Assembly (NCBI RefSeq): GCF_006345805.1
Contig: NW_021834819.1
Location: forward strand, 1 to 57,576
Length of the DNA stretch: 57,576 nt
From: Octopus sinensis
Lineage: Eukaryota
Reading direction: 5' to 3'
Each line of letters begins with the position of its first letter. Position 1 is the stretch's first letter. The notes beneath the pieces are model-generated. The model saw nothing but the letters and a program-made list of their open reading frames with translations, made no database searches and was not told the origin of the DNA. The translations under genes were made by a program, and so were the position numbers. Shown here piece after piece: positions 21,063 through 22,530 of this stretch.

Positions 21063-21243
21063 AAATATTAGTTATCGCCATACTAATATGGCATTCTTAT
21101 AAAAATAAGAAAAAATAAGAAAAAAGCTGACCGCTTATTAGCTCCATGAGGCCATCGCCTTAAGTTAGCTATTTGATACACAATCTGTATCCATATAACC
21201 TTTGAACAAGGGAGGTCAGTCGCTCCACACTACTTGGCCGGCA

Positions 21244-21285
21244 GCTACAGACGCGTTTCGGGGTATTGCCCCTTTTCAATGCAGC
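21244..21285 (-). ncRNA. Type I hammerhead ribozyme, copy 1
   Basis: 5'-GCUGCA UUGAAAA GGGG CAAUA CCCC GAAA CGCGU C|UGUAGC-3': 6-bp stem I, U3/A8 core variant, G10.1-C11.1 stem II, palindromic stem III ACGCGU, GUC cleavage triplet. Confidence 0.82.
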
Positions 21286-21606
21286 GTAGCCAAACCAGTA
21301 GGTGTCGCTTCCGACAATCTCTGTTCAAAGGTTTTATTTACCTAGCTTCGGTGGAATACATCCACTTGTTTTCAATAATAGAAATATTAAAATTACTAAG
21401 TCTCTCTAAAAGAGAACAACGGCAGCGTTCCCGGAAAATATTAGTTATCGCCATACTAATATGGCATTCTTATAAAAATAAGAAAAAAGCTGACCGCTTA
21501 TTAGCTCCATGAGGCCATCGCCTTAAGTTAGCTATTTGATACACAATCTGTATCCATATAACCTTTGAACAAGGGAGGTCAGTCGCTCCACACTACTTGG
21601 CCGGCA

Positions 21607-21648
21607 GCTACAGACGCGTTTCGGGGTATTGCCCCTTTTCAATGCAGC
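21607..21648 (-). ncRNA. Type I hammerhead ribozyme, copy 2
   Basis: Identical to copy 1, 363 bp away. Confidence 0.82.
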
Positions 21649-21968
21649 GTAGCCAAACCAGTAGGTGTCGCTTCCGACAATCTCTGTTCAAAGGTTTTAT
21701 TTACCTAGCTTCGGTGGAATACATCCACTTGTTTTCAATAATAGAAATATTAAAATTACTAAGTCTCTCTAAAAGAGAACAACGGCAGCGTTCCCGGAAA
21801 ATATTAGTTATCGCCATACTAATATGGCATTCTTATAAAAATAAGAAAAAAGCTGACCGCTTATTAGCTCCATGAGGCCATCGCCTTAAGTTAGCTATTT
21901 GATACACAATCTGTATCCATATAACCTTGAACAAGGGAGGTCAGTCGCTCCACACTACTTGGCCGGCA

Positions 21969-22010
21969 GCTACAGACGCGTTTCGGGGTATTGCCCCTTT
22001 TCAATGCAGC
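21969..22010 (-). ncRNA. Type I hammerhead ribozyme, copy 3
   Basis: Identical motif, 362 bp from copy 2. Confidence 0.82.
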
Positions 22011-22331
22011 GTAGCCAAACCAGTAGGTGTCGCTTCCGACAATCTCTGTTCAAAGGTTTTATTTACCTAGCTTCGGTGGAATACATCCACTTGTTTTCAA
22101 TAATAGAAATATTAAAATTACTAAGTCTCTCTAAAAGAGAACAACGGCAGCGTTCCCGGAAAATATTAGTTATCGCCATACTAATATGGCATTCTTATAA
22201 AAATAAGAAAAAAGCTGACCGCTTATTAGCTCCATGAGGCCATCGCCTTAAGTTAGCTATTTGATACACAATCTGTATCCATATAACCTTTGAACAAGGG
22301 AGGTCAGTCGCTCCACACTACTTGGCCGGCA

Positions 22332-22373
22332 GCTACAGACGCGTTTCGGGGTATTGCCCCTTTTCAATGCAGC
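22332..22373 (-). ncRNA. Type I hammerhead ribozyme, copy 4
   Basis: Identical motif, 363 bp from copy 3. Confidence 0.82.
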
Positions 22374-22489
22374 GTAGCCAAACCAGTAGGTGTCGCTTCC
22401 GACAATCTCTGTTCAAAGGTTTTATTTACCTAGCTTCGGTGGAATACATCCACTTGTTTTCAATAATAGAAATATTAAAATTACTAAGT

Positions 22490-22530
22490 CTGCATTGAAA
22501 AGGGGCAATGCCCCGAAACGCGTCTGTAGC
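22490..22530 (+). ncRNA. Type I hammerhead ribozyme, copy 5 (inverted unit)
   Basis: CUGCA UUGAAAA GGGG CAAUG CCCC GAAA CGCGU C|UGUAG. It begins at the inversion junction; loop II differs by one base. Confidence 0.78.

Follow-up and report, generated by a model that had tools for sequence, protein, structure and literature searches.

A block of repeated sequence at positions 21063-22762 of the Octopus sinensis contig NW_021834819.1 is described here, lying within a window of 57,576 nucleotides (the whole stretch of DNA that was analyzed, positions 1 to 57,576 of the forward strand). At a probability of roughly 0.7, this block arose in a single recent event, the insertion of a retroelement that is non-autonomous and non-coding and belongs to the metazoan non-long-terminal-repeat (non-LTR) retrozymes. 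Judged by its sequence, the element is a new and very young member of this known class, with a hammerhead ribozyme motif built on a U3-A8 core. An initial annotation of the same DNA had proposed the class, and the assignment holds: the retrozyme features that can be tested in sequence are all present, including tandem units, a type I hammerhead motif in each unit, a low GC content, an absence of coding sequence, and a monomer that is predicted to pair with itself. The placement of the element in a (TA)n microsatellite and the inverted copy that adjoins it lend this assignment additional support.

The Tandem Array

Tandem Repeats Finder (TRF) reports a period of 363 with 3.9 copies and 98% matches at 21063-22491, in agreement with the approximately 3.9 near-identical units of 363 bp that were first described. 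The main array occupies 21063-22489, has its ribozyme sense on the minus strand, and comprises 3.93 units of 362/363 nt. If unit coordinates are counted from the first nucleotide after the cut site (position 1), the array runs in the minus sense from unit position ~212, through three complete units, to unit position ~177. Both the size of the unit and the number of copies fall within the range that defines retrozymes (150-450 bp, from dimers to large multimers). The GC content of the unit, at 41%, lies below the 45-50% limit of the class, and the unit is likewise non-coding and free of an LTR, a primer-binding site, and a polypurine tract. The only open reading frames (ORFs) in the array, of 92-112 aa, are all on the antisense strand, and neither a Pfam family nor a homologue was found for them; the earlier view that no credible ORF is present is therefore upheld. 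No reverse transcriptase (RT) ORF was found in the window, and no RT or endonuclease (EN) coding sequence was found in or beside the array.

Within the 1.7 kb of element sequence, the differences between copies are three in total. These are a 1-nt deletion within an A run in the unit at 21974-21613, a 10-nt duplication (AAAAATAAGA x2.5; 21101-21125, from TRF and the unit alignment) that is restricted to the terminal partial unit, and a single substitution, A to G in loop 2, in the inverted copy, whose identity to the array is 99.6%. The direct units differ from one another by no base substitution. The near-identity of the copies points to a recent event, and the block is best read as the outcome of one such event.

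Architecture of the Insertion

The initial annotation placed the end of the element at 22490, a boundary that has to be moved, as an inverted, 5'-truncated partial copy of 273 nt (22490-22762, plus strand) adjoins the array and carries a fifth hammerhead motif. This copy extends from unit position ~329 via the cut site to ~238. Together with the array it forms an inverted repeat with arms at 22100-22372 and 22490-22762 and a spacer of 117 nt. At 22489/22490 the main array and the inverted copy adjoin through their 5' ends, which overlap by 2 nt. Each outward-facing end of the insert corresponds to a 3' end in the RNA sense and is AU-rich; these ends read …AAUAUUU (unit ~177) and …UCUAUUAU (unit ~238), and each passes without interruption into (TA)n.

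The 1.7-kb insert as a whole, 21063-22762, lies within a (TA)n microsatellite, with (TA)n at both ends. On the left is a (GT)n(TA)n microsatellite at 20902-21068 (a TRF row of period 2, TA), which is presumed to be the target site, and on the right is a (TA)n tract at 22760-22808 (likewise a TRF row), the other half of the target. When the flanks are joined in silico, one continuous (GT)n(TA)n tract is obtained. As (TA)n makes up 2.6% of the remaining window, and is scarce there, a chance landing of the element in (TA)n is unlikely. The two cDNAs that appear to compose the insert differ in phase, and both span cut sites, so the template would have been either a circle or an uncut multimer; either fits the sequence.

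Craig et al. (2021, PMC8557442) describe the insertions of Penelope-like elements (PLEs) as partial tandems, as bearing at their 5' end a 5'-truncated copy in inverted orientation, and as strongly biased toward microsatellite targets, (TA)n among them. All three of these published features are found in the insert at 21063-22762. Such a PLE-type insertion pattern speaks to the machinery that mobilized the element and not to membership of the element in the PLEs.

A 113-nt direct repeat, at 20494-20606 and 23112-23224, lies some way outside the insert on either side; it was considered as a target-site duplication and rejected, as its 82% identity is too diverged for a young insert. It looks like two copies of another repeat, related to transfer RNA (tRNA) and similar to a short interspersed nuclear element (SINE).

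The Hammerhead Motif

The motif, GCTGCATTGAAAAGGGGCAATACCCCGAAACGCGTCTGTAGC, is found four times on the minus strand of the main array, at 22373-22332, 22010-21969, 21648-21607, and 21285-21244 (copies 1 to 4, respectively). By its parts, again on the minus strand, it reads GCTGCA-TTGAAAA-GGGG-CAATA-CCCC-GAAA-CGCG-TC-TGTAGC, from the 5' strand of helix I to the 3' strand of the same helix. Specifically, helix I has 6 bp (GCUGCA/UGUAGC), and helix II has 4 bp (GGGG/CCCC) and the loop CAAUA, and is followed by GAAA. Helix III is minimal, consisting of the palindrome ACGCGU with C17 after it; within a monomer it amounts to A-C-[GC]-G-U, that is, 2 bp with a 2-nt loop. With C17 at 22338, 21975, 21613, and 21250, the predicted cuts fall at 22338/22337, 21975/21974, 21613/21612, and 21250/21249, and their spacings are 363, 362, and 363 nt. 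Both a string search and a structural descriptor recover one minus-strand motif per unit at exactly the spacings that had been claimed, and the last predicted cut is likewise where it had been placed, between 21250 and 21249. The fifth motif, in the inverted copy, lies on the plus strand at 22489-22530, with C17 at 22524 and a predicted cut at 22524/22525. It is recovered by a relaxed form of the descriptor. One base, the initial one on the 5' strand of its helix I, was lost where the copies join, which leaves 5 of 6 bp, and its loop 2 is CAAUG. In the monomer circle, the predicted junction would join …GAAACGCGUC to UGUAGCUGCC….

The core of the motif is UUGAAAA, as compared with the consensus CUGANGA; C3 has become U and G8 has become A, with the 3-8 pair kept (by position, U3 U4 G5 A6 A7 A8 A9 / GAA / U C). 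These two positions are Watson-Crick partners in the active ribozyme. Covariation of these positions to U3-A8 has been reported in several natural hammerheads, with variants that are active in vitro (Perreault et al. 2011, PMC3088659), and approximately 1,300 U3-A8 motifs of the PLE type have been retrieved in Schistosoma (Cervera and de la Peña 2014, PMC4209133). It is this published activity of the U3-A8 covariation, and not a match to a model, that would support catalysis by the window motif.

The descriptor, with which both strands were scanned, demands a 6-bp helix I; YUGANRA, the 3-8 pair of which may be C3-G8 or U3-A8; a helix II of 4 bp with a loop of 3-8 nt; GAAA; 2-8 nt, U16.1 and H17; and the 3' strand of helix I. 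In the 57.6-kb window its matches are confined to the array and the inverted copy, where it finds all four motif-bearing units and the inverted copy. In 300 dinucleotide-preserving shuffles of the whole window, 0 matches were obtained with one helix I mismatch allowed, and the chance expectation lies below about 0.01 per window. Since the copies are not independent, this counts as one improbable occurrence and not as five.

Strings of the form CTGATGA…GAAA at ~54709 and ~40376 on the minus strand were also considered as hammerheads and were rejected, as they do not satisfy the descriptor. They lie in related sequences, at 54640-54760 (-) and 40310-40430 (-), with CUGAUGA/CUGAAGA…GAAA, neither of which fits. 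The former of the two sequences forms a long hairpin, at 54682-54772, which scores 41.6 bits with the mir-181 model, just below the gathering score of 45.5.

Predicted Folds of the Monomer and Dimer

As a linear monomer, the 362-nt RNA from cut to cut is predicted to fold at -118 kcal/mol (z -5.1). As a circle, it folds at -113 kcal/mol versus -84.4 +/- 5.1 for shuffles (z -5.6), and is 63% paired. In the circular fold, helices I and II form, the core remains open, and the remainder of the unit lies in a long branched rod to which helix I leads. The motif sits exactly at the start of the monomer's long closing helix. Taken together, the predicted folds display the type I hammerhead arrangement, in which the core is surrounded by three helices and helix I is the open one. 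The 12-bp inverted repeat that had been noticed at 21197-21208 and 21322-21333 has no mismatch (AACCTTTGAACA / TGTTCAAAGGTT), and its arms pair with each other in the minimum free energy (MFE) structure. An extension of helix I had also been proposed, and a distal stem does prolong the helix past its first 6 bp in the MFE structure, with a register that differs slightly from the UUGGCU/GGCCAA pairing originally given. The antisense strand also folds well (z -4.8 versus shuffles) because the sequence is self-complementary, and there is no ribozyme match on that strand.

Helix III arises in the predicted folds only between two motifs. As ACGCGU is self-complementary, neighboring motifs can pair with each other into a double hammerhead. 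Two 80-nt domains co-fold in this manner, through a 6-bp intermolecular helix III, at -70.7 versus 2 x -32.3 kcal/mol, and the unconstrained MFE structure of a 469-nt transcript across two successive motifs is itself a double hammerhead. Since the circle bears a single motif, the circular monomer is predicted to be safe from re-cleavage.

A Proposed Route from RNA to Insertion

The chemistry of the hammerhead is well established, and we infer transcription, self-cleavage, and a circular RNA at the array. Read-through would transcribe the array into a multimer, in which neighboring motifs would pair ACGCGU with ACGCGU, form the double hammerhead, and cut after GUC. Cleavage would free monomers of 362/363 nt with 5'-OH and 2',3'-cyclic phosphate ends, and these may then be circularized by a host tRNA ligase of the RtcB type, as would be expected from published retrozymes, the RNAs of which accumulate as circles ligated by an RtcB-type ligase (PMC7229834). 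A lone motif in the circle would be without helix III, and would hence be spared. The RT and GIY-YIG endonuclease of a PLE may subsequently copy a template of more than unit length, either as a rolling circle or from an uncut multimer. Synthesis would proceed by target-primed reverse transcription at a nick in the (TA)n microsatellite, using both nicked strands, at AU-rich stretches of the RNA. The scars of the insertion are what point to this reverse transcription step.

Specifically, the locus may be the fresh and nearly unmutated RT product of a more-than-unit-length, and possibly circular, retrozyme RNA, with a PLE enzyme primed from both strands of the (TA)n target. We put this forward tentatively, as a proposal with rather less than an even chance of being correct. 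Its geometry has a counterpart in the twin priming of L1, in which two cDNAs made from two nicked target strands are joined internally to produce an inverted 5' segment, just as in the window insert. The insert differs from the products of L1 in that its target is (TA)n and not TTTT/A, there is no poly(A), and the template was longer than one unit. Unlike L1, the likely enzyme at the window locus is a PLE RT with a GIY-YIG EN.

Relationship to Known Elements

Metazoan non-LTR retrozymes are known from the coral Acropora, the mussel Mytilus, and the axolotl, and a PLE has been proposed as their helper (Cervera and de la Peña 2020, Nucleic Acids Research, PMC7229834). The window element has in common with them the tandem units of similar size with one type I hammerhead each, the low GC content, the lack of an ORF and of the LTR-associated features, and the monomer predicted to be highly self-paired. 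The sequence-testable features of the operational definition given by Li, Clavereau and Pollet (2026, bioRxiv 10.64898/2026.07.22.740005) are likewise present. The window element differs in that its core is U3-A8 where theirs is C3-G8, in that it is known from sequence alone, and in that its locus combines insertion into (TA)n with a 5'-truncated copy in inverted orientation. For retrozymes, the main texts of PMC7229834 and of Li, Clavereau and Pollet 2026 mention neither microsatellite targets nor inverted copies, and cephalopods are not mentioned in the main texts of Cervera and de la Peña 2020 (PMC7229834) and a 2020 review, although absence from the text of the papers searched is no proof of novelty.

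Two other groups of hammerheads provide useful comparisons. Satellite 2 of newts and the axolotl (HHR_Amex1 type) has units of ~330-350 bp, up to ~120,000 copies, and a consensus core (PMC7229834). It resembles the window array in its unit size and in a helix III that is very weak and has a palindromic loop, and its motifs cleave efficiently only as dimers. The window motif differs from it in having the 6-nt palindrome ACGCGU as helix III and a U3-A8 core. The minimal hammerheads of PLE pseudo-LTRs (pLTRs), including the Cercyon family of Schistosoma, share with the window motif the U3-A8 pair and palindromic positions 15.2-16.2 (PMC4209133), as well as dimeric action and tandem and inverted insertions of the PLE type (PMC4209133, PMC8557442). 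They differ from it in that helix II has 7-8 bp, helix I has 4-5 bp, and the motifs flank an RT-EN ORF (PMC4209133).

The layout of the window motif parallels that of the Rfam model Hammerhead_HH9 (RF02275) and of type I hammerheads of the Schistosoma type. In both, a proximal helix I of 6 bp is followed by an internal loop, ending in AC on its 5' strand, and a distal stem; helix II has 4 bp, loop 2 is of the form CAA…A, GAAA follows, and UC stands at the cut site. The window motif differs in its 2-bp helix III and in core positions 3 and 8, and it receives no score from the model. Loop 2 of the Schistosoma Sm-alpha hammerhead is CAAAUA, a likeness that serves as a lead only.

A scan of a metagenome yielded a single match, in contig WNGL01048539.1 (L001), which is a canonical-core relative of the window motif and not a member of the same family. 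It reads ACGCAG-CUGAAGA-GGGG-CGAAA-CCCC-GAAA-CGCG-UC-CUGCGU, with a consensus core, and has both the GGGG/CCCC helix II and GAAACGCGUC in common with the window motifs. The hammerhead of L001 lies at 1733-1775, 715 nt downstream of an RVT_1-like ORF (4-1017) and on the same strand. A position downstream of the RT ORF is the usual one for a hammerhead in PLEs, and from its sequence L001 looks like a PLE-type element of a metagenome eukaryote. Against HH9, the L001 motif obtains 23.9 bits (E 7.5e-4), which is below the gathering score of 52. Much of the HH9 score is lost to the short helix III, and the two core changes of the window motif probably account for the rest.

A possible trace of PLE machinery is also found in the window itself. 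The 257-aa product of an ORF at 41900-42673 (-) matches GIY-YIG weakly, below the threshold (E 0.006), and carries a Cys-rich linker (CSCx6Cx4C) upstream of the matching region. The ORF adjoins a (TA)n tract at 42758-42809. Its product can be aligned, at 37% identity, with the last 210 residues of a 616-aa protein (P0087); certain strings in the latter we take, by eye, to be RT-like. The ORF is probably the remnant of a 5'-truncated PLE. The sequence hints that PLE machinery is present in the genome, without pinpointing a helper, and no intact PLE was found in the window.

Weighing the Alternatives

Several findings count against the retrozyme assignment and are best considered together. The two core positions at which the motif deviates from the consensus are among the most conserved. 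At the gathering score, the Rfam 15 hammerhead models (clan CL00010, the curated covariance-model test) give no match in the whole window. At E<=10, no hammerhead match is found in 20800-22900 (2.1 kb), and nothing at all is found in 141 nt centered on one motif. The descriptor was composed post hoc, and nothing else recognizes the motif. Minimal hammerheads of the PLE type cleave poorly in vitro (PMC4209133), and the tandem part of the insert may have come from DNA-level amplification of a single inserted unit. Finally, the element is represented by a single locus, with no second copy in the window or in any collection searched. Besides the array and the inverted copy, no further copies of the unit were found within the window; an exact-pattern scan of viral contigs gave 0 matches; the protein collections, queried with the 92/112-aa antisense ORFs by exact look-up and homology search, gave no further copies; and two contigs of ENA sample ERZ25072740 have no repeat in common with the window.

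The scan with hammerhead models that was initially recommended has a divided outcome, in that the type I descriptor finds all copies and Rfam/Infernal finds none (E<=10). With the threshold set at E<=1 for the whole window, hammerheads are likewise absent among the best 150 of 319 matches. Since Rfam is blind to the U3-A8 motif, an Infernal/Rfam check taken by itself would have falsely dismissed it. The matches that Rfam does produce in 20800-22900, namely microsatellite-driven microRNA-like hits and an RT-2 RNA (E 0.77), were treated as chance.

The boundary between retrozymes and PLEs is thin, as retrozymes have been argued to derive from PLE pLTRs (Li et al. 2026, bioRxiv 10.64898/2026.07.22.740005), and the 363-bp unit could be the pLTR of an ORF-bearing PLE elsewhere, in which case the locus would be an insertion of several pLTRs with heavy 5' truncation. 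In its architecture the insert conforms exactly to PLEs, and the closest motif elsewhere, that of L001, is downstream of an RT-like ORF. We nevertheless consider this unlikely, as neither the array nor its immediate surroundings encode an RT or an EN, and the single RT and GIY-YIG EN ORF between pLTRs that characterizes an autonomous PLE is lacking. Furthermore, a run of 3.9 units with a motif in each and no ORF between them is what defines a retrozyme operationally (Li et al. 2026), the 6-bp helix I and 4-bp helix II are of the retrozyme type, unlike the minimal PLE motif, in which helix II is long and helix I short, and the GIY-YIG remnant in the window has no sequence in common with the unit. 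It is quite improbable, too, that the array is an ordinary minisatellite, whose copies multiplied as DNA from a single ancestral insertion, through unequal exchange or replication slippage, with an inactive U3-A8 core as the relic of a dead ribozyme. The silence of Rfam and the single locus would fit such a relic, and local DNA-level amplification of retrozyme arrays has been discussed (Li et al. 2026, bioRxiv 10.64898/2026.07.22.740005). Decay, however, would not be expected to produce paired core changes that preserve the 3-8 pair, a covariation reported to be active (PMC3088659), nor to spare, in every copy, all three helices (including the palindromic helix III) together with the rod-like fold. 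The units are, moreover, essentially undiverged, and unequal exchange does not make an inverted copy in another phase or RNA-sense 3' ends in (TA)n.

Assemblies are known to be troubled by the tandem and inverted structures of PLEs (Craig et al. 2021, PMC8557442), and the inverted 273-nt segment matches the array at 99.6% identity, both of which might suggest an assembly artefact (a fold-back or a chimeric long read) beside a simple tandem array that alone is real. A fold-back would give a perfect palindrome centered on the junction, whereas here 117 nt lie between the arms and the copies begin in different phases (unit ~212 versus ~329). The inverted copy is further distinguished by a substitution that the array lacks and by a separate (TA)n tract at its end, beyond which the sequence is unique, and an artefact appears very improbable. 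Least credible of all is a chance likeness to a hammerhead within an unrelated repeat. Such a likeness could be suspected because the descriptor was devised after the fact and the Rfam models are silent on the motif, but it is hard to reconcile with 0 matches among the 300 shuffled windows even when the helix I requirement was relaxed, with a motif placed exactly at the start of the monomer's long closing helix, with a double hammerhead as the MFE structure of the dimer, and with a near-identical, canonical-core motif near an RT-like ORF in L001.

Other Features of the Window

A hairpin with perfect 51-nt arms is located at 42845-42963, between the (TA)n tracts 42758-42809 and 43081-43135. It has sub-threshold matches to Rfam microRNA models and is surrounded by a 66-nt direct repeat (42688-42753 and 43010-43075). 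A SINE-like family with a box resembling the T arm of a tRNA (GAGTTCAAATTCCGCC) is found at 8465-8894, 11454-12331, 17335-17700, 33205-33755, 41426-41788, and 52618-52994. Its members occur in both orientations as tandem 2-3-mers of 180-184 bp (252 bp in one row); such multimers are unusual for SINEs. No tRNA was called in the window by ARAGORN.

Near the start of the window, (TACA)~395 at 4944-6519 is followed, after a spacer of ~250 bp, by (TATG)~283 at 6776-7897. These microsatellites are reverse-complementary, and together they constitute an inverted pair on the scale of kilobases. Finally, a 110-aa ORF at 15767-16099 (+) has 82 homologues at E<=1e-5. No Pfam RT family was found in it, and by eye we take it to be a C-terminal fragment of the RT of a long interspersed nuclear element.

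Significance

With this locus, the class of animal retrozymes gains a very young member. The locus does not open a new class, nor does it, alone, settle any long-standing question. If it is indeed a fresh RT product, it would provide locus-level mechanistic evidence for the step from circular RNA to tandem DNA, and for a PLE helper. Both have so far been argued from co-occurrence and phylogeny. The scars described here, which match the integration of PLEs, give the link between retrozymes and PLE machinery a concrete and testable form. The core of the motif has a further implication. Any descriptor that demands CUGANGA misses a U3-A8 core by construction, and surveys of retrozymes that are built on the consensus core may consequently under-count; whole families of U3-A8 retrozymes could be absent from current censuses.

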